A DNA stretch of 58,007 bases, filler included, from Platydemus manokwari (GCA_037951405.1; 4 parts of 4 records of this genome joined end to end with filler, not necessarily neighbours in it), one strand, 5' to 3'. Counted from the first letter of the whole stretch, positions 516-26,047 are shown. Translations and numbers: made by a program. The notes: generated by a model from the sequence alone, not told the origin.

Positions 516-3107
516 ATGTATCAAAATTCAGAAATACATTCTCAAGTAAAGGTATGATAATAGCAAGAAGATTTAGCTTATTAGTTAAAAATTTATTTAC
601 GATTATTTATTGAATTAATAATTCAAATTTACTTAGAATGAAGATAATGTAGTTAATTTTTTCAACGAAAAGGAGGTCAGTGAAAGTCATATTGTTAGAA
701 TATCGTTTTGATTTTTAAATTAGTGCGATGCTGATGAACTATTGGATCTGGAACAGTACGTTGATCAAATTTTGGAGGTTGAATTAAATCTTGTAGAACC
801 TTGATTTTGTAACATTTTGTAAATATTTCAGTTGAATGGGAAATTTTATCGAGTAGTCAGAGATGAACATTCAATTAACTTGGAAGAAGTCGATATAAAT
901 GAAATCAATAATGTGGGTGAAGAATTTGAAGAAATAGATTTTTGATTAATGTGTTTTGTAGATGGCAACTTCTCAGGAAAGTGGATTATATATGGATGAA
1001 AATGTAATTTTTTTTTCTTGTGACCCAAAAACCTCCAACTTATTGCAAATGATTTTTAATATTTTTAATGAGCTAATTAGTAAAGTTTTCAATCGATGTT
1101 TTTATTTAATTTTGACTAATTGAGTTTTGGTATTAATGATTTGAAAATGGTGATTTTTTATCATAATTTCTAAAGATTCTGATTGGTTAATTATAGTATT
1201 TGAATTTAAATTACTTTTATTGTAATGTTTAAAGTTACATAATAATTTAACGGTTTAATAAAATAAATATTACTGTTTATTAGATGTTACCAAACCAACA
1301 AACGATTAGCAATATAAAATATCCAACTCAGAAAACAGTTTTGGTATGTTGAAATGATTTATTGGGGGATATGTTTATCATGTTATTATCAAAGATGGGC
1401 GACCAACAATATATGCTAGTTGATAATCCCGAAGGGGGTGTTTCCTTTAAAGAAGTCGCCAACACTATCAATTATATTTGCCCGAAAATGGAATGCTTAA
1501 AGCGATTTAATCACGCAAACTCATTGACGAAACATTTCAAAGATGTTCACAACGTTAAAGTTTATATTTGTCGTCAGTGTCCGCGAATGTTTCAAGATCT
1601 GTCTGAACTCTTTCTCCATGCCCGTCGTGATCACGTCGATCCGAAAAAACCCCCTAAAGATCCGCGTAATTATAAATTTCATTGCGAATTTCCCGAATGT
1701 ACTTACATGACAAATAACGGTGGCACTTTCGAACATCATATTCGTGCCCACACCGGTGAGAAACCGTTTCGGTGCGATATTTGCGATAAGCGTTTCTCAC
1801 AAAACGCCAACATGAAAACCCACCGTAGTCGTCATGTTTCCGAAAAGGTGTTCCCGTGTGAAATTTGTAAGAAGAGCTTCAAAACGCACGACATTTATTT
1901 GGCGCATTTGAGGACTCGAGAGCACGAATTGCGCGAACATGTCGAGGAGAATATTGGTTCATCGGTATTTGGTTTTTATTGGTGGATATCATTAACAGGA
2001 ATGTCGCGTCACAGGTGAAAGTTGTGTGTCTGGGCTGCAATGAATGCTTTTTTAAGTTGTTTGATTTGCGAAACCATTCGAAAATGTGCAATCAGCGATT
2101 GGAAAAAATGTACAAATGCGTGTCGTGTGAAGTGATTGTTGCGGATTTCGATTCGTTGAAGAAGCACATCAAGAACCACAAGGAAAACATGACGATCAGT
2201 TGTCCGATTTGTGAAATGCCCGGATTCGAGTTCTACAACCAACTCAATCACCACATCACTCGCAGCCACATGATCAAGGTCAATCGGAAACATGTGTGTC
2301 GGTACTGTGAACGCACATTCCATGAGGAATCACAGATGAACGAACACGTCAAGGAGTATCATGCTGATGAAATCAATTCACGCAAATCACACGGCATCAT
2401 CGGACGATTCCAGTGTCCGTATGAGGATTGTCTGTTCACGGCCAACACAGAAATGCTCATCCAGAGCCACATCAATCAGCACGAGAACGGCAAACTCAAC
2501 GCGGTAAAATCATCACCGAAGAAGCGCGGAAGGAAGCGAAAGTTTCCCATACAGACAGGATCATCAATGGGAGAGCTCGATAATTCATCAGATATCAGGA
2601 ATGAGTGTGGGGAAATTTCACGTAAGATAAATTAAACATGAATCCATGGCAACGGTGATGGATATTTTTCAGTTATCAATAATGGACAAGTAATGCCAAC
2701 CGTGGAGAAAAGAGGACGAGGAAGGCCACGGAAGGTTGTCACTTTGCAGAAACCGTTTCAGAAAACGGAAATGCATGTGTTGCCTGAAATGGACGACGAA
2801 ATCGAAGGAACCCAGCTCGATTATGAGAATCTGGCTGAAGCATTTTGTAAGGGCGCTTTTAAATAAATATTTTATTGATTTTAACGTGTTACCAGTTAAA
2901 AGTGAGGCTGAATTAACCGAGGAATCATCCATTAAAAGGCGAGGAAGACCACGTAAAGGATTGGAGAGTTATAATTGCGTGATGAAAAAATCAGAAACTG
3001 CCGAAAATTCAGAGTTCGCCGTTGAGAACTCAGCAGAGATTTTTACCCCCTATATAAAGAGTGAAGGTATTTTAGAAAATGTCGATTCAGATTGCTTATA
3101 TGTTTGA
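516..3107 (+). CDS. Multi-C2H2 zinc-finger protein with C-terminal AT-hooks (10 exons, ~624 aa)
   Basis: Manually spliced exons 516-551, 637-675, 724-777, 832-912, 962-1003, 1284-1343, 1395-1964, 2015-2621, 2673-2846 and 2896-3107 give 1875 nt in one open frame with GT-AG introns, mostly 48-54 nt. About 10 fingers (one C2HC), a canonical HTGEKPF linker, AT-hooks KRGRGRPRK and KRRGRPRK plus KKRGRKRK, and an acidic N-terminus. The 5' micro-exons are less certain than the finger exons. Confidence 0.88.
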
Positions 3108-7651: not shown

Positions 7652-9638
7652 TGTAAGGGAGATTCGTATATAGAAAGGTGGATGTCGTATGTTTTTTGAT
7701 TTCATGTTGATTAGTGATTGCGCAATTGTTAGTTGCTTCAATCCAATAAACCTCACAAGACGTTATTACATCATCAATAATAAAATTATGTATATAACAT
7801 CGTTATTGTATTAAATAAATTATTCGGCGTAAAAAGACTTATTTGTAACATGGCGACCAACGTCCAGAATTTTATCAAGCCTCCAGAGCAATTGAAGCCT
7901 AGAGATTATTTGGAGAAATTCATTATAAAATTGAAGAGATTTATCGAGCTGCCTCAACAGCCAAGAGAATTCGAAGAAACACTGGCGAAACACTTTTCTC
8001 GAGATAGAATTGCTGCCAATGTATGAGGCCACCGAAGGAAGAGGTTTTGAAGAAACCCTTAGAAAAGTGTTCGAGCTTAAAATGAACCTCACTGCAGATC
8101 TTGATGCAACATTGAGATACCGGAAAGGAAAGGAAGAAAGCTGCAATCAACTGACAGATAATATTCTTCGGCATAAATTAACTTGGCCGTCATTGATGAT
8201 GTTTTTGACTTAACACTCAATTGAGGACGTGGAAATAAAATAGATCCACAATCGAAAGGATCATTCTATTCACAATCAGGAGGGCAGAGGCAGTTTAATG
8301 CCATGCATGACTATGATGAAGAGATGGACAGAGACATAGAGAAACACTCAAACGAGACTGCATTAATAGACGAGGCTCTTGTGTACAGGGAGGCGTTAGG
8401 AGCCATAAATTTGGTTTAAGTAGGTATTTAACTGACAATAAATGTATGAATGAGAATGTATGTGAAATGTATGTATGTGTGTCTGAATATATGAGAATGA
8501 ATGATGATTTTATTTCGAATGATTGTGATCGTATTTCCATTAATGATGAAACCTCTTATAATATACCTATATTTAAGAATAAGCTGGATAATATTGTTAA
8601 ATTTAAAAATTTACATAAGTATGCTTGTAATGCGGTAGATGTAAGTAATTTTTGTAACTTGAAGAAAGAAAAATTGAATATCGTTTATGATGTTATGAAT
8701 GGCAGACCCAGCATTAAGATTTTGTTAGAAAAGCATATTAAATTGCATTGCTTGTTGGATACAGGTGCTAAAATCAATTTTATCAGTGAATCAATGATTA
8801 AAAAACTAAATATGATTGATGGAATAGGTGAATCTTTAGGCGCCCCTAAAACGCCAGATAGAGAAAGAGTCTTCGAATCCAAAGTTATTTCAGAACTCTT
8901 GTATTGAAACAATGAAGTCCTTATCATCACAGTACCAATGGTCTGATCGAGCAACAATTTCTAACAATACGTGACGCAATAACGGCAAGTATTCAAGACA
9001 AGAAATACACAGATTGGCTTGACTTATTGCCTCATATCGAATTTATGATTAACGCTACAATACAACAATCGACGAAATTTTCAGCAGCAGACATAGTTTT
9101 TGGTAGACCTATTAATAAAGAATGGCAAGAAAGACAAATTACGGAAGAAGATATAAATGTACACCAATTAGAAAATCAGAGAAAACAGAATCAAAAGAAT
9201 ATTGAAAAGCAAACGAGGGCTAGATATCTTGAGACGAATAAGGTAGAACCACAAACGAAAAGAAAATACAATGTTGGCCAATGAGTATTAATAAAAAGAG
9301 AAAACCCTAATAAAATGGAAGATAGATACGAGGGCCCATATTAAATAATAGAAAAAATTCACGACAGGAGTTACAAGCTGAAGAATGGAACTGGAAAAAT
9401 GAAAATAAGATTTTAAAAGAGAAGATGTAAGGGAAATTCGTAAATGGAAATGTGAATGTAATATGTATATTGAGTGTGTTTGTTTGATTGTATGTTGATT
9501 AATGATTGCGCAATTGTCAGTTGCTACAATCCAATAATCCTCGCAAGACGTTATTACATCACCAATAATAAAATTTTGTATATAACATCGTAATTGTATT
9601 AAATAAATTATTCAGTATAAAACGATTTATTTGTAACA
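7652..9638 (+). mobile_element. Internally deleted Ty3/Gypsy LTR retrotransposon (gag and protease joined to integrase C-terminus)
   Basis: LTRs TGTAAGGG...TGTAACA at 7652-7850 and 9426-9638, clearly homologous but diverged. Primer-binding site (PBS) TGGCGACCA at 7851; PPT AAAAGAGAAGA before the 3' LTR. Aspartic protease motif LLDTGA (ORF 8446), then integrase remnants (YHHSTNGLIE, LPHIEFMINATIQQSTKFSAADIVFGR, RYEGPY). No RT/RNaseH, stops and frameshifts present, no clean TSD. Confidence 0.9.
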
Positions 9639-10856
9639 ATGATTATTATCAATTTTATTAATGATTAACGAAAACATTTAAAATGAAAACAAACACAATC
9701 ATAATAAAAAAATCAACTTTAAAAGCATTATATACACATACTAACACACATGCATTGTCAATTTTAAATTTTATGAAAGAGTTTACACTCGCTTTTTTGA
9801 TTTAGTTAAACAAACTATTAATTTGTCAATATAAAATTGGATGATAGAATTATTGTATTGTGTTATTTTAGTTTGATTACTGAGTGTTGAATTTGTAGCT
9901 GGTAGCTGTGTATATAAGTCAGTATAATCGTTTCATTTGCTGTGAGTATAGAAAATGTAGATTTCAATGATAAGTATAGGGAGAATGTGGCTGATATTAT
10001 GTCATTGTAGGTTAGTATTTCAAACCGATTTATTTAGAATTATTGATTGCTACAGTAATATCAAAAATTTTCTTGTCATTTATCACGATTATGGTCGTAC
10101 AACTATTTCCAATGTGTGTCAAAATCTGTTTCAATGAACCTAACATTATCAAATTCAAATTCTGTGTTAAAAATTCATAATTCAGATTCATAAAATTCAA
10201 ATTATTATTATTATCAAAAACTGTCAGTTATATTTTACAGAAAATTTATGGTCAATATTGTCTTCGATTCGATAATGGGCTGTCTTCATGATTCTTTTCT
10301 GTTTATCAAACATTGGTGTATAACGATTTGGTAATGATATCTTTATGATGAATGAATTCATAAAACATTTATCAAATACATTCTCAATTCAATAACTGAT
10401 TCATATGGTTCAAACTTCAATGGAAATATCTGAAGTGTAAGTACTGGTTTATATATTTTTAATTCTAGTAATCAAACGAGTTGGTCTTGTTTTTATACTT
10501 CATCAAACGATATATCTTCGTAAAATTTGAAAATTAGAATGTTTCATCTTATGGAGTTAAAAATGCTTTTAACTTCTCAGATAAAATTCTTGACAGACAG
10601 ATTTACATTAAACTATCTCTGTACTTTGAAATCAATCAAGATAAATGTATTAACAATGAGAAGGTCAATAAAATATTTTTGATAGAAATAATAAATGATT
10701 TGTGTAAACTAAAGCTCCATTCATCAATAATCATAACGATGATGTATTATAATATAATTTTATTTATGAAAACGTAATAAGTTTGTTTATCGGTTAATTG
10801 TATTTATATTTAATTACTCTGCCAATGCATTCATATTGGTTTTTGAGATATTTTTG

Positions 10857-12254
10857 ATGAAATTTCATAAAATCGATATTTTTATTATTGTAACTTTGGC
10901 TATACCGAAATTCTCTTTGGGTTTCATCACTAGTTTGGTAATTCCGATCTTTCCAACATTGATTGCAAATTATTTCCAATCGAACCAAACCTTGACAAGC
11001 TCAGACAACAATGAGACGAGTTCTGATATGAAAAACATCAATTTTAATTATCAGAAATTATCGATTTTATTTGCCATCAAATTTATTATTCAAGTCGGTG
11101 CTGGTCCATTGTTGGGATATATTTGTGAAATACTTGGATCGATCAATATATTATTATTCGGTGCAATATCTCAAGGATTCACGATTTTTTTCTATGGGTT
11201 TGGAAATAAATTCTTTCTTTTGATTGTGGGTCGCATAATTGAAGGAATAGCAAATTCTGCTATAAATTGCGGAGTATTATCGTTTATTCCTTATCGTTAC
11301 AATGAACATAAAACACAAGGTTTTGTGTATGGAGTAGTAGGATTGAGCCATTATATCGGAGCATCCTTAGGGCCGGCTTATGGTGGATATGTTTTTCAAT
11401 ATTATGGAAAAACTGTGGTATTTCTCGCATATTTTTCATGTATAATTTTGGAAACAATTTTTGTAATTTCTTTATTAGTGTATCTTCGTTTCATGGAGAA
11501 AAATTCATCCATTAAAAAGCCAAGATTACATGAACCAATTAATATAGAAATAACTGATAGAACAAACATCGATATAAAAGAAGATAAGAACTGTCAAGAA
11601 ACATTATTGGATGATGCTAATGAAAAAAATAATCCAGTATCAACTGATATCTCATTATCCACAAGGAAACATAATATATGGCAATTTCTTAAGGATCCGT
11701 ATTTTCTAATTGGTGTGACATCAACACCAGTGATTTTAATCACTATCCACATTTACATGGCCACACTTCCTCGATACATGAGAGAAAGGTTCAATTCAAG
11801 TGAATTTCAACAAGGTGTAATATGGTTGCTCAATATCGTTGGATATATTACTGGATTTTTTATTGGAAATGTTCTTAATAATAAATTCTCAAAAAGTCGA
11901 CACATTGTTTTAATGATAACATTATATCTTCAATCAACAGCATCTATTTGTATGGCTTTTCTACCGAATTGGTGGTCAATATCTTTCATTTTATGTTTCA
12001 TCGTAAATCAACAATTACTTTTTGATATAGTTTTGTCACCTATAATCGCTATCATTGTCGATAAGAGACATTATGGAAATTTCGGTATGATGGGTGGAAT
12101 AATTGGAACATGCCATGCTCTGAACTTCTCGATCGGAAATTATTTAGGTCCAATTTTATACAGTAAAATTGGATTTATATATTTGAATGTGATTATTTTA
12201 TTGTTCGGAATTGCATATGGACCTCTGTTATTGCTGTTTAAAAAATTCTTATAA
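10857..12254 (+). CDS. Intronless divergent SLC18 family MFS transporter (VAChT/VMAT-like), copy 1
   Basis: Single-exon 465-aa ORF from ATG 10857 with ~12 TM segments. SLC18 hallmarks: VIPIFP, glycosylated loop 1 (NQT, NET), LFAIK, GRIIEG, GPAYGG..Y.GK..VFL, FLKDPY, FDIVLSP..VDKRH, YGPLLLL. AATAAA lies just 3' of the stop. Confidence 0.9.
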   Translation: MKFHKIDIFIIVTLAIPKFSLGFITSLVIPIFPTLIANYFQSNQTLTSSDNNETSSDMKNINFNYQKLSILFAIKFIIQVGAGPLLGYICEILGSINILLFGAISQGFTIFFYGFGNKFFLLIVGRIIEGIANSAINCGVLSFIPYRYNEHKTQGFVYGVVGLSHYIGASLGPAYGGYVFQYYGKTVVFLAYFSCIILETIFVISLLVYLRFMEKNSSIKKPRLHEPINIEITDRTNIDIKEDKNCQETLLDDANEKNNPVSTDISLSTRKHNIWQFLKDPYFLIGVTSTPVILITIHIYMATLPRYMRERFNSSEFQQGVIWLLNIVGYITGFFIGNVLNNKFSKSRHIVLMITLYLQSTASICMAFLPNWWSISFILCFIVNQQLLFDIVLSPIIAIIVDKRHYGNFGMMGGIIGTCHALNFSIGNYLGPILYSKIGFIYLNVIILLFGIAYGPLLLLFKKFL

Positions 12255-12413
12255 TTCCTTTTATAAATAAAACAGACATTCAATTCTACTTGGCTTGATT
12301 TTAGGATTTTATTTCATCCATTATGAATGAAATCATTATATTTGATAAACAATTTTACTAGATTGTCGATCGATTATATTCAATATTAATTATTTCGATT
12401 AGATAATATAATA

Positions 12414-12821
12414 TGATCAGTATAGATTATTACAAACTACGGTGTGTGCCCCCTAAGAGGGTGTGAAACATTGTATTGGGGACGCTAAATTTTTTAATTC
12501 TAAATTAAAATTTAGTTGTTATAATTTCTGGTTTGTTGAAAGAAATTTATTGTACGAATTAAACTCTTCATTTCATTGCTGTTGTTTTAATAATATTGAA
12601 ACACAGCACATTTATAAAAATTTTATATCCAGGAAAATGGGTAAGTGGCTAATGAAAAGTGATGCAAAAAATTCTGCAGCTTCAGATCTGGAATTACAGA
12701 TTATTTATTAATAAAAAAGTATTATTTGAATAATCTTTCTATGAAGAAGATATTTATTTCATTTGAATAATATTTCATATGGGAGATATCACCTATTACA
12801 ATCTGATTTTAGGGGCGTCAG
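12414..12821. mobile_element. Small insertion (MITE- or SINE-like) present behind SLC18 copy 1 only
   Basis: Absent from the paralogous flank behind copy 2. Bounded by a 14-bp direct repeat TAGATAATATAATA (12400-12413 / 12822-12835). Has imperfect inverted ends GCCCCCTAA...TTAGGGGC with TA outside. Confidence 0.5.
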
Positions 12822-13794
12822 TAGATAATATAATAAAAATGAAGGAGCAATTTAAAAAGTTTTCATACCACTGGATTATATAACTAACAATCTTACATCG
12901 ACTATGACTTAATAAATCGGAATAAAAGTAATTATTTTGAATTAGAACTAATATTTAAAGGCATTTTTATGAATTTCAAAATGTAAAAATGTCTTCATCT
13001 GTCATATATAATGTTTTTTTAAAATCAACTAGGATATAAATGACCATTAATTAATGGTCAATGTAAAATTTAGTTGTCCTACTTTTATCTTTGGATGAGA
13101 AAAGTTTTATTGATTGATTTCTATGTGTTTAATTTTTTTTAAAAATATTCACTCGCTCTTGTCGATCACTCTTCAACACTACATTATATTTCATTCTGTG
13201 AATTTCAATTTCTCGATTTTAAAAAATTAATTTGTTTCTCGATATAAAGTACATGTTTATTTATTTATTAAAATATTTTATTTATTTTTTATTTATTTAT
13301 AGAAATACAACAGTTTTTTCAAAATTAAAGTACTTTATTTATTTTTATAAATTTTTGTCATGGCTGACACTGTGATATGCGATTGCAAGTACGTAAATTG
13401 AAAGAGAGTATTGTGCCTTGTAGTAAAATGTGTTTGAGCCCAAATGTGCTTGATTTACTACACTCATTGATCTAAGAAAAAATAAACCACATTAATTATT
13501 TTTCCGATTTAGAGTACCGTTTTGATGAATTTTTCGTTAGATATTAGAGAATAAACTATTTATTATCAGTTATGAAACTGTCATTGTTCTTGATGTATCG
13601 TTTGAGTAGCTTTTTAATTGTAATGCTTTTATTAATTTATAATGTTGCGTACTAAAAATGTACTATTATATGATGCTAGAATTTGATGTACGATTTGAGC
13701 ACATTATATTATCTTATAAAGCTGTCAGTTAAAAGATGAAGTTTTATAGCAGAAATCGCAAAAATATAAACAAACACTTTATAATAATAATTAT

Positions 13795-16150
13795 GGTAAC
13801 ACATCGATTAAAAACAATTGTGGATCTAAACTGCTTACTCGCAAATATTAGAAAATATTTTTGGAGGGAACGATATGTGACGTGTTCTCCTAAACAACCT
13901 TCAAAGGCTGTCTTTTTTAAACTATTCCGAGTTAGAGAGGTTTATCTAAGGTTGTTTTGCACGTTTGAAACAACATTCTTGAAATTTTGCATATGAATAG
14001 AAGAAACTAAAATGGAGTCTTTTGTAAAGCCATTTCGAATAGCAATCGTTTGCTGGTCAGCTGACACGATAACAAGAAGCTTCCATTATAGAAATTGATA
14101 ATCCTCTTGTGATGAAAAGTAAACACCTATCATTATCCTGTCTTAAACCATTTTGTTTAAACATTTTTGTATAACAGTGTCATTTGTTTCATGAAATTTT
14201 TCTACCTATATCGGGTGTGTATAAAATATAATTTATTGCCTTATGTTGGTGTCCCAATATGTCTTCATGACTGACTAAAATAATTTGTTTAGCAAAGATA
14301 TTTATTCATAAACATTGGTAATCGATGTATTCATACATTAAAATATGGGATGTACATGATTTTTTCCTTAAATTGTTCCATGGATCACAATTTGATAGTT
14401 CAATAATACAATGAATTCAATATTTCAATCAATTATGTCTCCGACTTCCAACCGTTGTGACGGAGATATCTTCTTTACTAATTTTTAAAGCTGCTTTTGT
14501 TGCTGTCCTCTTTTTATCCTTCATTGCAGTTAGTTTGCATTTATATTTGACTTTATACAAGCAAGAGCTGTTTTATTTATTATTTTCTTATTCATCTCTA
14601 GTTTCTTTAGAACTACTTAATTGAACTATGTTTGCAAAGTTCCAAAAATCATTACAACAAAAGCGAACAGTTCCACAGTTCAGTCGCATCGATTTTTTAA
14701 TCTCATTTCAGAGGTCTAAAAAATTTTCGATAATCTTTTGATCAGTTTCATCCATTAGGGCAGGTTTGTCCACAGAGTAGTTTATATCCATTATGATAGT
14801 CATAGATTTAGTAGTTGAAGATCCTTTCTTGGTTTGGATTCCGTGAATTGGCATTCTTTCTCCACGAGGACTCTTTAATACGCATTGATAGCAATTTCCT
14901 TGGCCAATATATTCATCGTTTTGTCGTGCCGGTAGAGTACAAAAGAGTGTGATGATTTACAGCATTTGAAAATGTGTATTTGCAATTCCGGTTCATACAA
15001 GCATGTCTGCATGTCATACATCTCGTAAACTTTTACTTCAGAGTGAGAAGGTTGTCTGTTTGTGCGCTATGAATAAATCTGAATTCAACAATAGAGATCC
15101 CTAATAAAAACTACCTTTGACCACATTGGACTAATAACACTTCAGTTGCTGTTAAACCATCCACTTCTGGTTTAATTAGTCTAGTTTAACTGGTATGATC
15201 GCTTAAAATATTGTTTCATTAATTTTTGTGTACATTGATCTTCTTTGATTTGTCTTAGCTTCCAATTTCATAACGAAAACCATTGATGATAAGGCTTTGT
15301 TGAACTTTGAACTTTATCTCACGGTTGATAAGAATGAAAGAAACCGTGGTACAAATTTTCTTTGAGACATATTTAATGATCTCTGTTATTTTGTCCAACG
15401 ATATTTTGCTCATTTCACTTGGTAGAATTGACTCATTCTAATACCTCTTCGATTGTTGTAACTTGGTTATTTAGTCCAGCATTTTTTGCGTAAGGGGTAT
15501 ATGGCTGCCATTTTAATAATATATTGTTTTCTTGTTAGTAGATAATACTCTTGAGGTTTTGATTACATGATATACTCCTCCGTCATGTTTCGTAGTCCAC
15601 AACAGCTATTTGGTTTGATAAATTTGATAAAGATAATTCAATGAGCAATATTTCGGTAAACCAATGATGATTTTCAGATATTTTCTTAAGATCACATCAA
15701 ACCGTAGCAGCCTAATAAACATGATATAGTAATTTCTCACTGAAAAACTCAAAGGTCCTCAGCTTCTGTCATTCCATATTTATTATTAGTCCTTTAGCAA
15801 TATTACGTAATAATACTCTTCTAGTCTGATTGTAGGAATTTTCTCCTTATACATCATGAATTTCTTCGTGTTAGTACTTGCTTTTAGATTTGAGGTTTGA
15901 AGTTGAACCCTATTTGGAACCTGTGAACCAATGTTTCGTTGATCATCAATTTGAGTCTATTTTTGTTTATCTCAGTAATTGTTAGCATAGACGTGACATG
16001 AAATTTGATGATCTGAAATTATACAGGCTCTCTTTTTTAATTATTTGTTTCATAATGTCTGTATTCAAGAATAATTTGAACTTTTTGCTGGAGGTATCGC
16101 ATGATGGAATTTTCATTCAGACTCATATGTTCAAGGACTGAGAATCTAGC
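13795..16150 (-). mobile_element. Decayed RLE-endonuclease non-LTR retrotransposon (R2/NeSL/R4-like group)
   Basis: Minus-strand frame fragments: ISCHVYANN (YADD-like); LRKYLKIIIGLPKYCSLNYLY and CGLRNMTEEY (thumb); TCRHAC/YEPELQIHIFKCCKSSHSFVLYRHDK (CCHC plus RHD); KPRKDL...IIMDI (PD..D-like); VELFAFVVMIFG..VLKKLEM (REL C-terminus). Also RT subdomain 1-3-like WKLL...SILVSS...AFEGCLGEH...FLIDV at 14090-13800. Many stops and frameshifts. Confidence 0.7.
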
Positions 16151-16353
16151 TTTAAATTATAATAATGGAATTATAATAATGTCTAAGAACCTCATTGAAC
16201 ATTGTCGATATTTTTCATACTGGGTCTTTCAAAAATGACTCAATACAAAAACTTGTGTTCTGCACGCCTATCATTTCAAAAACACACTTCGAATTAACTA
16301 AAAAATCAAAATTGTAATAATTATTATCATAATAATTTTAATAATGATCTAGA

Positions 16354-16730
16354 TGTTGTCAACAATGAAAATAATGAAATTAAAGGCAACCACTGCAATA
16401 AGTCAAAAACAAGGTTTAACACCAAGAAATTATCATGCTTTTAAGCCGGAACTTAAAAGAATACCATATGCCCAAAACTAGAATGAGACACTTGTATTCA
16501 AAATAATGAGTTTGTAGAGTCCATACGTAGAGTCGATCCGTAGTGCATGTACAGAACGCAGTCAAAATGCAAGGAAATGTGAAACATCGATAGATCATGT
16601 ACATTTTAACGAGTCTTTCCTAAAATTCAGGACAAACAACCAGTTACCAATGACCAACAGAATCAAAATGAATCAGCTTTTATAATACATGTTAGTAGCG
16701 GCTACGTCACTCGCTATTGATGTGTCAACA
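16354..16730 (-). mobile_element. Possible solo LTR
   Basis: Ends TGTTGTCA...TGTCAACA (imperfect inverted TG..CA), TATAAAAG on the minus strand, GC-richer than flanks. No clean TSD. Confidence 0.3.
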
Positions 16731-18767
16731 AAAGAACTCATGATTTGGATTTTCTTAACTTTTATTTAATAACAAATAAAACATTTTTCAAACAAATTTA
16801 TGGAGAGCTTTATCTTTTATTTTTAATCTCAATTAGGATTATGTATATAAATATTTATTTTGAAAAATTAAAATCAAATTAAAATTTAATTTTAAAATTT
16901 TAAAACATTTTATTTAAAGATATTAAATTTTATAATTTATTAATTTCTTTTAAATCGTAATTTGAAAGTTGTTATTTAAAATTATTTTAATTAATGCTCA
17001 CAGTACAAACCCATACACTTTGATGAGAGTACAGTAATTTGAATAAACTCGTCGAGTGGAAACCATACTACAAGGTTACAATACTCGCAAACGCCTGCCA
17101 GACTGTCAGCAGAGACAAAAATTTATAAATAAAGAAATATTTTTATTTTGAAAAACTTTTGTATTTAAAAATTCTATATTTAATGATCAGAAGGACACTT
17201 AACAAAGCATCACGAAGATAACCCTTTACTGAACCGAGGACAATATGTATCGTAGATTTCATGTTAAAAATATGTTGAAGTTCTGGCCCAACAAGTTACT
17301 TACAACAATTAATTCACATTGGAAAAAAAATATGTGTATACATTTGCATGACAATACGTACGAAATATCCATTAATTTTTATTATATGACTTTTTATTTA
17401 GTCAGCATGTATTTTTATGTTTTTACAACTCTTGGATTTTTTGCGCAAAATATCGATATTTATAATAATTATTATTCATATATACGTACAATAATAATAC
17501 CAATAAAATCACCAATAGCAAATCCATTGAAATTCCCTAAAATAAAAAAATAATTTATAAAATATTAGTACGCAATAAGATATCGCGCATTAACAGCGAC
17601 AAATAAATTGTCATCTATTTTCGCGCATGAAAATCATGTCACAGAATAAAAAAATCATTTGATTAAATTTAATCGAGAGATATTTTCTCTGTCTAATAAA
17701 TTTATTCAGAGAGGATTTTTGTCACTAGTGAATAAATTCGATCGATAAAATAACAAATTCACTGGAATTAGATTTAATCACAAGAAAATATCTGAAAGTG
17801 ATTCACACTGCCTCTATAAGACAGTAATCATAATCAACGCGGACACAATTTTACTGCCGTTATTTTCGGTGCCCGCAGTTCCACAGACGACATTATACTC
17901 CACATCAATTGGAGAAGGCACATTGTTTAAATTTCAATTTGACACACAATAGAAGATCATCTGGTGCAGAAGACCAATACTCCTGTATATGCCCGGCATT
18001 TGCTGGAAGACTCAAAGTAAGACCATGCCTGTAAAATACTTGTCTATAATATATACTGTATCATTTTATTCCTATTATCGAGTTTGTTGCTGAAAAAACC
18101 TCGAAGGTAACCGGGCTTGCTCCAAGAGAGTGGAGTTTATAAACCGTCAACTTAATCCAGGAGTCGTAAAGTTCGTCTTTAGTTTAATTTGATGTATAGA
18201 GTAGTTAAAAAATCAATTTCTAATTTTATTTTATTTTATGTCAATCAGTACTTGTATTGGTGTTATATTTAACAAACATGTGTAGCATAAAATTTTGGTT
18301 CTTGATTATATAGGGACTGTAAAGTCAATTATTCATAACCATTGTAATAAACACAGTTAATAGTTTAAATAGGGTTTAAGTATTTTGAGACTGATAATTA
18401 AGTTAATACGAATATATCGCTACTGCCACACCTGTGGTGTCTTCACTTAATGAGGCTGTGCGAGGTGAAGAACATCATTATAAGATAGATTACATCTGTG
18501 GCCTTAATCAAGAGCTCATATACACAAGTGATATCAAATAAGATTAATCTTAGTTTAACAATAAAATCAATAAAGCCCGAACTTAACAAATTTATGAATT
18601 ATTGAAATGGAATTTGAATTTGATAATGTTAGATTCATTGGAAAAGATTGGGACACAAGTCTGAAATAGCTGAACGACGATAGTCGTGATAAACGATAAG
18701 AAAAATTTTAATACTATTGCTACAGTGATTCGTTTGCTACTAAACTTACATTAAAACCAATCAATAT

Positions 18768-19290
18768 AAATGCTATTATTTGATTTGCTTGAGAGTAATG
18801 ACAATAATTGTTGATATTAATAATGTTATTTAAGAAACTGAACAAGATACAAAATAATAACAAAAATTGGAAAATTGCGAAACACATTACTCAAGCAGAT
18901 TGCTGCTAAATAACCGAAAGTTGGATATCGGAAAAAAGCACGTGGAGGAGACTGTTTTTATTAATAAGAAATTGATTTAATTAATGAATGTTTTAAAAAA
19001 TAGCTTCCATGGTGCTATGACTAAATATTGTTTGAAAGTTTCTCACTCTAAAAATCTCCTCCACAATTTTGCATGCTGTATCCCGATTCGTCATTTATCT
19101 TGGAATTGAGTTTTTTCTATGCATTTGCTTTCGTTCTTTGTTTTCCTCCGGATGAATCTATTTGAGTATCTACTTGGGAAATATTTCTTGTTCTTGTGCT
19201 ACTTGTTCAATTTTCGGTTTCATGAACGAATATTATTAATATCAAAAATTATTGTTATTACTCTCTAAGCAAATTAAATAATGGCATTGA
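18768..19290. repeat. ~520-bp imperfect palindrome (foldback/MITE or inverted duplication)
   Basis: ATGCTATTATTTGATTTGCTTGAGAGTAATGACAATAATTGTTGATATTAATAAT (18770) matches the reverse complement of 19232-19289. Inner GTGGAGGAGA (18942) pairs with TCTCCTCCAC (~19055). Confidence 0.75.
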
Positions 19291-19829
19291 TACCAGGACG
19301 AACAATCCTTGTTTCAACCATCAATTCAAAGAGCTTCAAATTTTCTGATAATTTAATTGATTTCAACGGTAACTTCATCATTATATGAGTTATTGAAACC
19401 CTCTAGAACCACTAAGAGTTAACATAAAACATCGTATCATAATATATATTTAATACTTTTATACATTATTAGTAATTCTCTTGTATCACGTGGTCCTTTA
19501 TTAAAACCGTAATGCACTAATGACAATAAGATCTAAATTTAATTATCTCAGTACTTTGAAGTTGATCTAGATAAAGGTATTATTAATGAGAATTTCAATG
19601 AAATATTTTACAGAAAAAAAGCTGAATGGCATTGATTCAAGCTTTATTAATCAATAATCACGACAATGACATAGTATAACATTATTTTATTTATGAAAAC
19701 GTAATCTGAAGCACAATAGAATCCTTTTATATCATTGATTGTCATTTCGTCTATCAGTAAATTGTATTTTTCATTCAAATACTTTGTCGTTGTTTTCATA
19801 TTGGTTTTATTTTCATATTGGAGATTTTA

Positions 19830-21227
19830 ATGAAATTTCATAAAATCGATATTTTTATTATTGTAACTTTGGCTGTACCGAAATTCTCTTTGGGTTTCAT
19901 CACTAGTTTGGTAATTCCGATCTTTCCAACATTGATTGCAATTTATTTTCCTTCGAACCAAACCTTAACAAGGTCAGATAACAATGAGACGAATTCTGAT
20001 ATACAAAACACCAATTTTAATTATCAGAAATTATCGATTTTATTTGCCATCAAATTTATTGTTCAAGTCGGTGCTGGTCCATTGTTGGGATATATTTGTG
20101 AAATACTTGGATCGATCAATATATTATTATTCGGTGCAATATCTCAAGGATTCACGATTTTTTTCTATGGGTTTGGAAATAAATTCTTTCTTTTGATTGT
20201 GGGTCGCATAATTGAAGGAATAGCAAATTCTGCTATAAATTGCGGAGTATTATCGTTTATTCCTTATCGTTACAATGAACATAAAACACAAGGTTTTGTG
20301 TATGGAGTAGTAGGATTGAGCCATTATATCGGAGCATCCTTAGGGCCGGCTTATGGTGGATATGTTTTTCAATATTATGGAAAAACTGTGGTATTTCTCG
20401 CATATTTTTCATGTATAATTTTGGAAACAATTTTTGTAATTTCTTTATTAGTGTATCTTCGTTTCATGGAGAAAAATTCATCCATTAAAAAGCCAAGATT
20501 ACATGAACCAATTAATATAGAAATAACTGATAGAACAAACATCGATATAAAAGAAGATAAGAACTGTCAAGAAACATTATTGGATGATGCTAATGAAAAA
20601 AATAATCCAGTATCAACTGATATCTCATTATCCACAAGGAAACATAATATATGGCAATTTCTTAAGGATCCGTATTTTCTAATTGGTGTGACATCAACAC
20701 CAGTGATTTTAATCACTATCCACATTTACATGGCCACACTTCCTCGATACATGAGAGAAAGGTTCAATTCAAGTGAATTTCAACAAGGTGTAATATGGTT
20801 GCTCAATATCGTTGGATATATTACTGGATTTTTTATTGGAAATGTTCTTAATAATAAATTCTCAAAAAGTCGACACATTGTTTTAATGATAACATTATAT
20901 CTTCAATCAACAGCATCTATTTGTATGGCTTTTCTACCGAATTGGTGGTCAATATCTTTCATTTTATGTTTCATCGTAAATCAACAATTACTTTTTGATA
21001 TAGTTTTGTCACCTATAATCGCTATCATTGTCGATAAGAGACATTATGGAAATTTCGGTATGATGGGTGGAATAATTGGAACATGCCATGCTCTGAACTT
21101 CTCGATCGGAAATTATTTAGGTCCAATTTTATACAGTAAAATTGGATTTATATATTTGAATGTGATTATTTTATTGTTCGGAATTGCATATGGACCTCTG
21201 TTATTGCTGTTTAAAAAATTCTTATAA
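19830..21227 (+). CDS. Intronless divergent SLC18 family MFS transporter, copy 2
   Basis: 465-aa ORF from ATG 19830, offset 8973 from copy 1. Differs at 9 residues, all within the first ~80 aa; the remainder appears nucleotide-identical. Confidence 0.9.
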   Translation: MKFHKIDIFIIVTLAVPKFSLGFITSLVIPIFPTLIAIYFPSNQTLTRSDNNETNSDIQNTNFNYQKLSILFAIKFIVQVGAGPLLGYICEILGSINILLFGAISQGFTIFFYGFGNKFFLLIVGRIIEGIANSAINCGVLSFIPYRYNEHKTQGFVYGVVGLSHYIGASLGPAYGGYVFQYYGKTVVFLAYFSCIILETIFVISLLVYLRFMEKNSSIKKPRLHEPINIEITDRTNIDIKEDKNCQETLLDDANEKNNPVSTDISLSTRKHNIWQFLKDPYFLIGVTSTPVILITIHIYMATLPRYMRERFNSSEFQQGVIWLLNIVGYITGFFIGNVLNNKFSKSRHIVLMITLYLQSTASICMAFLPNWWSISFILCFIVNQQLLFDIVLSPIIAIIVDKRHYGNFGMMGGIIGTCHALNFSIGNYLGPILYSKIGFIYLNVIILLFGIAYGPLLLLFKKFL

Positions 21228-22129
21228 TTCCTTTTATAAATAAAACAGACATTCAATTCTACTTGGCTTGATTTTATGATTTTGTTTCATCAATTATGAA
21301 TCAAATCATAATATTTTATAAGTAATTTTATTAGATTGCCGATCGATTATATTCAATATTATTTATTTCTATCAAATAATATAATATAACCCGTATCTAA
21401 CAATCTTACATCGACAATAATTTAATAACTCGGAATAAAAGTATTTATTTTGAATTAGTGTACAAATTTATTAGCATCTTTATGTAAATTTTAACTCATC
21501 TCAAATTATAATTTTAAAATCAGTTAGAAAATAATGATAATAAATCAGGTATAAAATAATAAATTTTTGAGTTGAATTGGCATCGAATGATCCATGAGTT
21601 GATGAATAGTTTGACCACACAGTAGATCCCTAAGCGAGCGTGAAATGAGCCCATGAAAAGAAGTGATATCGTATGAAGTTAGGTGTTGAACTAAGGCCTT
21701 CCGATTGGGAGAAGAAAAGGTCAAAAATGGAATGTTGGACTGAATAGGTTATCAGTCATCGGTGATGGTTTTTATATGCCTGTAATGCCAAGGTGCAACT
21801 GAAGGATGTTACTCTATGTATTTTAATAAAGTCGATAGAGTAGTTACACTGTTGTAAAATCCTTGACCGGATAAGTTTGTCCTTGAATTGAAAAATGACT
21901 CCAAGACTATGTTCATCGTTTTTCGCTTTGCCTATGTGGTAAAGTTAGAGGGGTAAATTGCCTTCTGTTTTACTTTGGGAAATATTTTTCAGCATCGGTT
22001 TTTCATTCATCAACTACTGGTCTCTGTATTGGGATAGAGTGTTGTGACGGACTGGAATTGGGATTCCTCCAATCTTTAGGTCAGTTAGATGGTGTTGCCA
22101 AACCTTGACGTTAGATTTTGTTACGTTTA

Positions 22130-25451: not shown

Positions 25452-26047
25452 TTCAAATTTAATTCTTATTTTATATAAAATCATATTTTTATATAATTAA
25501 ATTTATTTGTTTATATATTTGTATTTAAATAGATTTTTCGTGTCTTGACTTCTCAGTTCCTTTTAATGTGTGGTTTGTAAAATAAAAGTGGCTCACATGG
25601 TGACCATGCATCTGGATTCAATTCGGAAAAGGTCAATGACTGAAAATTATAGAAAAGAAGAAGGAAAATACTGAGACTATATTGAGAACATATGAAGAAG
25701 ATATAAGAAAGATAAAAGAAGTTGTAGAAAAGATAAATAAGGGATATAAAAGTAGAAATAAAATAAGATATAAACACATAGAAGAATTAGAGTTTTCGAG
25801 TAATGAAATATGTAGAGTATTCGATGCAGAGAAAATTAAAAAAATCCAAGATTTTAAAGAAAGGGAGATGTGAGATATTTTAAATGAATTAAATTTTTAA
25901 TTCAAATTTGATTCTAATTTAATATCAAATCATTTTCATATAAAATTAAATTTATTTGTTTATATATTTGTATATAAATAGATTTTGGGTGGCTTGACTT
26001 TTCAGTTCGTTTTTAATGTGTGGTTTTTATAATAATAGTGGCTAACA
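25452..26047 (+). mobile_element. TRIM-like miniature non-autonomous LTR element
   Basis: Direct repeats 25452-25597 (5'-eroded) and 25869-26047 (TGTGAG...GCTAACA). PBS TGGTGACCA at 25598; PPT AAAGAAAGGGAGA before the 3' LTR. The ~270-bp interior ends in EKIKKIQDFKERE, similar to the integrase end at 44.7 kb. Confidence 0.85.

Follow-up and report, generated by a model that had tools for sequence, protein, structure and literature searches.

In the flatworm Platydemus manokwari (GCA_037951405.1), a stretch of DNA of 58,007 nucleotides, hereafter the window, in which parts of four records are joined with filler, carries two copies of a single-exon gene that encodes a transporter of the major facilitator superfamily (MFS) resembling the vesicular amine and acetylcholine transporters of the SLC18 family. 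Both copies, termed A and B, are located on the plus strand of the piece comprising window positions 1-26283, which corresponds to contig C1655846 of an assembly of 911 Mb in 2 million contigs with a GC content of approximately 29%. Full open frames extend from 10836 to 12254 and from 19818 to 21227, and the first ATG chosen as start in either gene agrees with the aligned N-termini of paralogues. At this GC content, the probability that 465 codons are free of stops by chance is approximately 8e-18. The original prediction, an earlier reading of this DNA, had named two intact open reading frames (ORFs) of 465 amino acids here, and both were recovered exactly as given (Table 1).

The window proteins match the Pfam family MFS_1 with an E-value of 3e-35, and comparison with NCBIfam yielded weak DHA1/DHA2 efflux matches only. 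A phmmer search of the sequences of the Protein Data Bank (PDB) returned VMAT2 (5e-23), VMAT1 (1e-19) and VAChT (7e-18), followed by the next families at 2e-5 and then by NorA at 1e-3. The AlphaFold2 model, based on an alignment of 72 sequences, reached a pLDDT of 87.9 and a pTM of 0.86 and comprises 12 long helices together with short connecting helices, its only weak spots being luminal loop 1 and the central cytoplasmic loop. All Foldseek matches ranked 1-34 are chains of VMAT1, VMAT2 or VAChT, with a target-normalised TM-score of up to 0.91, and a feature search of the ESM Atlas revealed 'synaptic vesicular amine transporter' and VAChT as the nearest clusters. The proteins are thus shown to be SLC18-type MFS transporters with a confidently predicted VMAT/VAChT-like fold of 12 transmembrane helices (TM), as Pfam, the PDB, Foldseek and the phylogenetic trees concur with the family assignment of the original prediction. 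The exact 465-amino-acid product returned no record upon look-up.

Features that characterise working SLC18 proteins are conserved, namely Gly and Pro residues in the transmembrane helices, a DPY motif preceding TM7 and an RH motif following TM10. Luminal loop 1 between TM1 and TM2 is short, with approximately 25 amino acids, and harbors two N-x-S/T sequons at N43 and N52. In the central cytoplasmic loop, which is otherwise variable and disordered, we observed a conserved S/T-L-L stretch followed by acidic residues or Asn (copy A residues 244-252, approximately 11586-11612; ETLLDD, GSLLSEE, KSLLNKD and GSLLNEN across the paralogues). This putative dileucine-type sorting signal could replace the C-terminal tail, which the window proteins lack.

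Table 1. Coordinates of the two genes, of the cavity residues (numbered as in copy A) and of the duplicated segments in the window, and contigs of the related copies in the genome.
Feature	Position	Strand	Basis or remark
Copy A, single-exon coding sequence (CDS) of a 465-aa SLC18-like MFS transporter	10857..12254, stop included	+	ORF listing, first ATG
Copy B, same gene, protein 98% identical to copy A	19830..21227	+	ORF listing, first ATG
TM1 codons K18-F-S-L21-G22	10908..10922	+	multiple sequence alignment, codon check
K75, equivalent to VMAT2 K138; TM2 Lys kept (LFAIK)	11079..11081	+	all alignments
TM4 codons R126-I-I-E129 (GRIIEG); R189 kept as R126, Q192 replaced by E129, a new carboxylate	11232..11243	+	
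M301 at VMAT2 E312; TM7 LEPxLP reads IYMATLP, Glu lost	11757..11759	+	
Y330, equivalent to VMAT2 Y341; TM8 Tyr kept, partner of D390	11844-11846	+	
L379 at VMAT2 N388, the partner of E312	11991-11993	+	
D390, equivalent to VMAT2 D399 and VAChT D398; TM10 Asp kept (LLFDIVL)	12024..12026	+	
TM11 codons G417-T-C-H420; D426 replaced by G417 (AIAD reads GIIG), inner-gate F429 by H420	12105..12116	+	
AATAAA, polyadenylation-signal-like hexamer 12 nt past the stop	12266..12271 (copy A), 21239-21244 (copy B)	+	sequence match only
Duplicated segment, copy A	10782..12414	+	self-BLAST; pairs with 19745-21387 over 1643 bp, 96.8% identity
Duplicated segment, copy B	19745..21387	+	self-BLAST
Tract 100% identical between the copies	11089..12303 and 20062-21276	+	CDS nt 233 to 49 nt past the stop
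slc18a-3/5-like copies, loci L003-L009	contigs C6238, C1614741, C1256985, C1472196, C1114663, C941418, C1260686		

Cavity residues in comparison with VMAT2

Residues were mapped onto VMAT2 by HMMER against the PDB sequence, by hhalign of the subfamily against twelve canonical VMAT and VAChT sequences, and by a MAFFT alignment of 72 sequences, and all three agree. TM1 lies outside the local HMMER and hhalign alignments; its residues were taken from the multiple sequence alignment (MSA) only, which runs gap-free from the conserved P-I-x-P motif.

Among the four canonical acids of SLC18 transporters (VMAT2 D33, E312, D399 and D426), only D399 has its equivalent in the window proteins, namely D390, whereas L21, M301 and G417 are found at the other positions. 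In TM1, LLDNML aligns with FSLGFI, so that G22 stands in place of N34 next to the lost D33. Both basic residues of the family, K138 in TM2 and R189 in TM4, are present as K75 and R126. The original prediction had listed these losses in TM1, TM7 and TM11 and the retained Lys, Arg and Asp, and it proved correct at every position that it named, for TM1 by the MSA only; the alignments place neither Asp nor Glu at D33, E312 or D426. Likewise, the VAChT signature (LLDNML in TM1, D193 in TM4, LEPT in TM7, VDTAL in TM10 and AIAD in TM11) is missing except for the TM10 Asp. Most paralogues have Glu instead of this Asp, and one has Ser.

Moreover, a new buried Lys, K18, occupies the position of VMAT2 A30 three residues before L21, and Lys or Arg is invariant at this site in the slc18a-3/5-like subfamily. 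Further positions are either kept, as Q142 (Q79), or altered: S196 and S200 correspond to N133 and N137, N305 to L294 and Y433 to F424. When equivalent cavity positions are counted, a procedure distinct from electrostatics, VMAT2 has four acids and two bases, and the window protein has two acids (E129 and D390) and three bases (K18, K75 and R126) in addition to three His. The net charge thereby changes from approximately -2 to approximately +1, in line with the recharged cavity that had been predicted.

The three His were part of the original prediction as well. They are indeed present in TM5 (H165 at VMAT2 L228), TM7 (H298 at A309) and TM11 (H420), and they are located at pocket or gate sites: H165 one turn from V232, H298 three residues before the E312 position, and H420 at the inner-gate position F429. 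The MSA restricts them to the two window copies, as the paralogues contain F, L, I, Y, Q, T, S or M there, and they were rejected as a trait of the family.

In the VMAT2 structure, the largest polar network consists of D33, N34, K138, Q142, R189, Q192, S196, S197, S200 and D426, with D33 in a central position contacting N34, K138, S196 and Q192 (PMC10959523). Gln or His occupies the Q192 position in canonical VMAT and VAChT and in almost every other SLC18-like match. The window proteins carry E129, which is invariant in the close subfamily, and all triclad-type clade members examined (19/19) lack D33 and have Glu or Asp at the Q192 position. Two basal flatworm members (P0003 from Macrostomum lignano and P0004) retain D33 together with Asn or Gln at this site. 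We read the charge as relocated, not as simply lost, because Q192 contacts D33 in VMAT2 and because E129 co-occurs perfectly with the loss of D33 across the clade. By analogy with VMAT2, the carboxylate would have moved from TM1 to a contacting position in TM4, where it may still pair with K75 or R126. As to the two other networks, E312-N388 is hydrophobic on both sides (M301 and L379), and of N305-Y341-D399 the Tyr and the Asp are kept. The statement of the original prediction that most coupling residues are lost thus stands for three of the four canonical acids, though it overlooked the compensating Glu129 in TM4.

A flatworm subclade represented by a further locus of the genome (L018, contig C1532523) and by P0010 displays Lys at the D399 position and Asn at the D426 position, and only the TM4 Glu is left. 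These proteins are devoid of any canonical acid, a charge inversion more extreme than that of the window genes.

Phylogenetic position and relatives

The most careful tree was calculated with IQ-TREE from 54 rows under LG+C20 PMSF, with a fungal MFS outgroup that split off with 100/100 support, and quick trees agree. The flatworm sequences form one clade (support 100/99), in which the subfamily comprising slc18a-3 and slc18a-5 of Schmidtea mediterranea (Smed) is supported by 100/100. The branch that joins the flatworm clade and VAChT-type sequences against VMAT, other SLC18-like sequences and the fungal outgroups likewise received 100/100. That the flatworm clade is the sister of VAChT is a tentative placement, as the order within the VAChT-side group is unsettled and the stem is long. 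The window pair falls inside the slc18a-3-like group as a further lineage-specific duplicate, and its nearest relative is the copy on C6238.

The genome contains at least 8 close paralogues (39-59% identity), two of them with stops, and approximately 15 more copies at 24-28% identity. All full-length copies are single open frames, and six of the close paralogues are intact and full-length. Among the loci L003-L009 (Table 1), we observed four more intact full-length single-exon copies, one copy ended by the contig end and two with in-frame stops; of the pseudogenised copies, C1114663 has 1 TAG and C1260686 has 2 TAA or more. As judged from these copies, the slc18a-3/5-like subfamily is a lineage-specific expansion subject to birth-and-death evolution. 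The orthologue of Smed slc18a-3 is located on C1614741, and as even this best match reaches only 59% identity, S. mediterranea was rejected as the source of the DNA. Canonical VAChT is encoded as a single open frame on contig C1452899, with 56% identity to P0016 of the tree's VAChT group, and canonical VMAT is a multi-exon gene that was found exon by exon. Since canonical VAChT and the divergent genes are single open frames and VMAT is split into exons, an origin from the VAChT side is consistent with the gene structures. The window ORFs were also considered as VAChT or VMAT orthologues, an assignment that was rejected because the canonical genes are located elsewhere in the genome.

To assess the taxonomic range, 1.84 billion cluster representatives were searched exhaustively with a profile, and the range rests on the best 150 of these. 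Among them, only Smed Slc18a-3 and Slc18a-5 scored above E-150; a Macrostomum protein followed at 2e-53, then transcript-sized contigs and finally VAChT/VMAT proteins. A word-indexed protein search returned Smed slc18a-3 only and, with a 20-sequence profile of the clade, slc18a-3 and slc18a-1 only, but it is uninformative on taxonomic range, as hydrophobic words saturate its candidate list.

Eight Smed-slc18a genes were cloned by Vu et al. in 2015 (eLife; PMC4500094, supplementary file 1), of which slc18a-4 and -7 are canonical VMATs and slc18a-6 is canonical VAChT, and in BLAST the divergent genes reached E-values between 1e-12 and 1e-19 only. In situ hybridisation located slc18a-1 to brain and photoreceptors, slc18a-5 to brain and pharynx, and slc18a-3 to brain, photoreceptors and discrete mesenchymal cells (PMC4500094). 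In the literature, covering main texts and flatworm SLC18 phylogeny, we found no function, residue analysis or phylogeny of slc18a-1, -3 or -5. The undescribed subfamily of the original prediction is therefore a distinct one whose function and residues we did not meet in the literature, though its planarian members slc18a-1, -3 and -5 had already been cloned and mapped in brain, photoreceptors and pharynx. In other words, the subfamily is catalogued yet uncharacterised, and what is new is the apparent relocation of the TM1 carboxylate to TM4 and the cavity of changed sign.

Slc18a-3 (A0A0H3YK86; P0001) and Slc18a-5 (A0A0H3YF28; P0002), for which expression patterns alone are on record, are 46-49% and approximately 40% identical to the window proteins, respectively. 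They have in common with them Lys or Arg at position 18, hydrophobic residues at D33 and E312, Glu at the Q192 position, an acid at D399, a non-acid at D426 and a short C-terminus. However, neither is an orthologue of the window genes, and His165, His298 and His420 are absent from both.

Among the canonical transporters, VAChT (SLC18A3) is the nearest tree branch and is encoded by a single exon like the window genes. Its fold is the same (target-normalised TM-score 0.88-0.91), and the TM2 Lys, the TM4 Arg, the TM10 Asp and the DPY and RH motifs are common to both. The sequences differ in that the identity is only approximately 20%, D46, D193, E309 and D425 correspond to L, N, M and G, H338 to Tyr, luminal loop 1 is short and the C-terminal tail is absent. 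VMAT1 and VMAT2 are the best matches in the PDB by sequence and by Foldseek, and the equivalents of K138, Q142, R189, Y341 and D399 are kept; nevertheless, D33, N34, E312, N388 and D426 are replaced by L, G, M, L and G and Q192 by E, and the VMAT branch is set apart from the flatworm clade by the 100/100 branch. The gates described for the VMAT2 structure, F429/Y433 on the inner and W318 on the luminal side (PMC10959523), are altered as well, with H and F replacing the former and Phe, or Ser in the paralogues, replacing the latter.

SLC18B1-like or 'vesicular amine transporter-like' proteins of other invertebrates (for example P0043 from Nilaparvata, P0066 from Ctenocephalides and P0107 from Hypsibius) have lost one canonical acid, D426, to Gln. 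Unlike the window proteins, they retain D33, E312 and D399, contain Q or H at the Q192 position and group on the VMAT side of the tree. Their names stem from automatic annotation, and the group may correspond to SLC18B1.

NorA and the bacterial DHA1 drug/H+ antiporters have the MFS DHA1 fold in common with the window proteins and are the next-best PDB relatives, although much weaker (E approximately 1e-3). Bacterial DHA1 antiporters work with only two membrane-embedded carboxylates, and H+ antiport can thus be sustained by a core of two acids. In NorA, coupling is carried by E222/D307, the acidic pair named in the PDB title, and these acids are located on TM7 and TM10, in contrast to E129 on TM4 and D390 on TM10 of the window proteins.

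The tandem pair, its selection and its surroundings

Upstream of the duplicated segments, a weaker similarity of 77% connects 10599-10778 with 19529-19705. The coding sequences of copies A and B differ at 13 nucleotides, all within CDS nt 1-232, resulting in nine non-synonymous and three synonymous codon changes, and 7 of the 9 amino-acid differences fall into the poorly modelled luminal loop 1. On both sides of the identical tract, the identity of the flanks is only approximately 80-90% and similarity is soon lost. Because of this divergence of the flanks, the copies are read as the product of an older tandem duplication, the coding part of which would have been homogenised by gene conversion. 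Alternatively, the identity may be an assembly artefact.

For pairs of paralogues, the Nei-Gojobori method gave pN values of 0.24-0.31 versus pS values of 0.59-0.70, corresponding to an omega of approximately 0.16-0.28. The ratio is not near 1, and as estimated from these codon comparisons the clade is under purifying selection. For the first 78 codons of A versus B, mostly loop 1, omega is approximately 0.7, based on too few changes to judge. This value could be taken to indicate that both ORFs are recent duplicates that are either unexpressed or in decay and whose unusual residues reflect drift, particularly as the family undergoes birth and death and includes the pseudogenes on C1114663 (1 stop) and C1260686 (2 or more). 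Moreover, none of the RNA runs on record contains the window genes; 85% of the sampled words occur in a single run of 543 M letters, which is of unspecified type. We nevertheless consider decay very improbable. Both frames of 465 codons are intact in AT-rich DNA although their flanks have diverged by 10-20%, and the unusual residues are common to orthologues and paralogues at saturated dS and to the expressed S. mediterranea genes. In addition, the amino-acid differences between A and B are concentrated in a loop that is variable and modelled with low confidence.

The surroundings of both genes contain short dispersed repeats, with inverted pairs at 10053-10180 and 18592-18719 (81%) and at 18765-18842 and 19213-19292 (85%), and direct pairs at 7687-7850 and 9474-9638 (90%) and at 25452-25597 and 25901-26047 (87%). 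Among them, an element with a MITE-like appearance is located upstream of each copy, in opposite orientations. Upstream of copy A, a 153-amino-acid ORF at 8446-8907 (+) with an LLDTGA motif, which may be a retroelement remnant, has a weak match to a gag-type aspartyl protease (E 0.0044, below the Pfam cut-off). Further upstream, two overlapping 218-amino-acid ORFs in different frames at 1362-2635 (+) encode C2H2 zinc fingers (zf-C2H2 1.3e-15, zf-C2H2_4 1e-7) and probably represent one zinc-finger gene broken by a frameshift or a short intron; with a GC content of 0.34-0.43, this region is richer than the remainder. A promoter and terminator scan used a bacterial-type consensus and is uninformative for flatworm DNA.

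Proposed transport mechanism and cargo

Based on the residue pattern, the window genes may encode transporters that work and are still coupled to protons, have a cavity of net positive charge and carry a non-classical cargo, a reading to which we give about an even chance. By homology with VMAT2, E129 would substitute for the TM1 Asp as the partner of K75 and R126 in the N-terminal half, and D390 together with Y330 would maintain the proton site of the C-terminal half. With E129 and D390 as its two titratable carboxylates, the protein would then most likely still work as an antiporter of the rocker-switch type that is coupled to H+. Classical monoamines and acetylcholine are probably not carried, because D33 and E312, which bind the amine of monoamines and contribute to the ligand pocket of VAChT, have been lost and because TM1 contains an additional buried Lys; the cargo could be a neutral, zwitterionic, anionic or only weakly basic small molecule. 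The neutral or anionic cargo of the original prediction can thus be regarded as a reasonable inference from the sequence. Given the kinship with the S. mediterranea genes, use in neurons and photoreceptors is probable.

Several observations weigh against this reading. The protein ends directly after TM12 (…LLLLFKKFL). In VMAT2 and VAChT the cytoplasmic C-terminal tail carries vesicle-sorting motifs, and as these are missing with the tail, a vesicular location is not assured. The motif-A-like loop between TM2 and TM3 (G-x-x-x-D/N-R-x-G) is degenerate and reads GYICEILG. The dS values of the paralogues are near saturation, which renders the omega values rough, and the RNA runs, as mentioned above, do not contain the genes. 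Finally, the concurrence of D33 loss with an acid at the Q192 position may reflect a single ancestral event, that is, conservation and not repeated covariation.

A different reading of the same two carboxylates is that the window proteins are cationic amine/H+ antiporters, in which E129 and D390 serve proton and cation binding like the minimal acidic pair of bacterial DHA1 transporters and the cargo is an amine, possibly flatworm-specific. NorA has been studied through its acidic pair, and the S. mediterranea relatives are expressed in the brain. The TM10 Asp, moreover, is kept, and its VAChT equivalent D398 is essential and the residue most critical for the electrostatics of the ligand, while E309Q and D425N leave vesamicol binding intact, implying that this ligand does not strictly depend on charge at either site (PMC11369146). 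In VMAT2, however, E312Q and R189A abolish transport, and the polar network has D33 at its centre (PMC10959523). With hydrophobic residues at D33, E312 and N388 and with K18 buried, the counted net charge becomes positive, which is unfavourable for a cation, and for the classical amines the same genome has canonical VMAT and VAChT genes. We therefore regard an amine antiporter as somewhat unlikely.

The loss of three of the four canonical titratable residues might also mean that the antiport cycle was abandoned and only the fold was kept, so that the proteins would act as uncoupled facilitators or as non-transporting MFS proteins of a receptor-like or regulatory type ('transceptors'). Such a change would fit the degenerate motif-A-like loop, the replacement of the luminal-gate Trp and the absence of the C-terminal tail. 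It is at odds with the strict maintenance of two buried carboxylates with their partners (E or D at the Q192 position in 19/19 members; K75, R126 and Y330 kept), with the conserved Gly/Pro, DPY and RH motifs, and with purifying selection. The uncoupling from H+ suggested in the original prediction is not indicated, as E129 and D390 remain together with K75, R126 and Y330. Lost coupling is further weakened by the vesamicol binding that persists in the VAChT variants E309Q and D425N and by NorA-type relatives that work with two acids. We consider an uncoupled protein quite improbable.

A bolder extension of the proton-coupled reading, which we deem unlikely, would describe the flatworm genes as a radiation from an intronless VAChT-like gene, during which the sign of the cavity flipped (from approximately -2/-3 to approximately +1), TM4 acquired the carboxylate of TM1 and the remaining acids that bind amines were lost. 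The result would be a new class of H+-coupled vesicular loader that serves neurons and photoreceptors and carries a non-amine transmitter or metabolite of anionic or zwitterionic nature. In the two window copies, H165, H298 and H420 could in addition form a pH- or metal-sensing site with E129 and D390.

The range of transmitters that a neuron is able to package is set by its SLC18 transporters, and the four buried acids of these proteins are considered central to the recognition of amines and the coupling to protons. A clade that appears to be under purifying selection and has discarded three of these acids, while one carboxylate seems to have been relocated, provides a natural experiment on the number and place of the charges that an MFS antiporter needs. 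For the neurons and photoreceptors of flatworms, the clade likewise hints at a vesicular cargo outside the classical amines, and as RNA interference and in situ hybridisation work in planarians, this question is directly testable.

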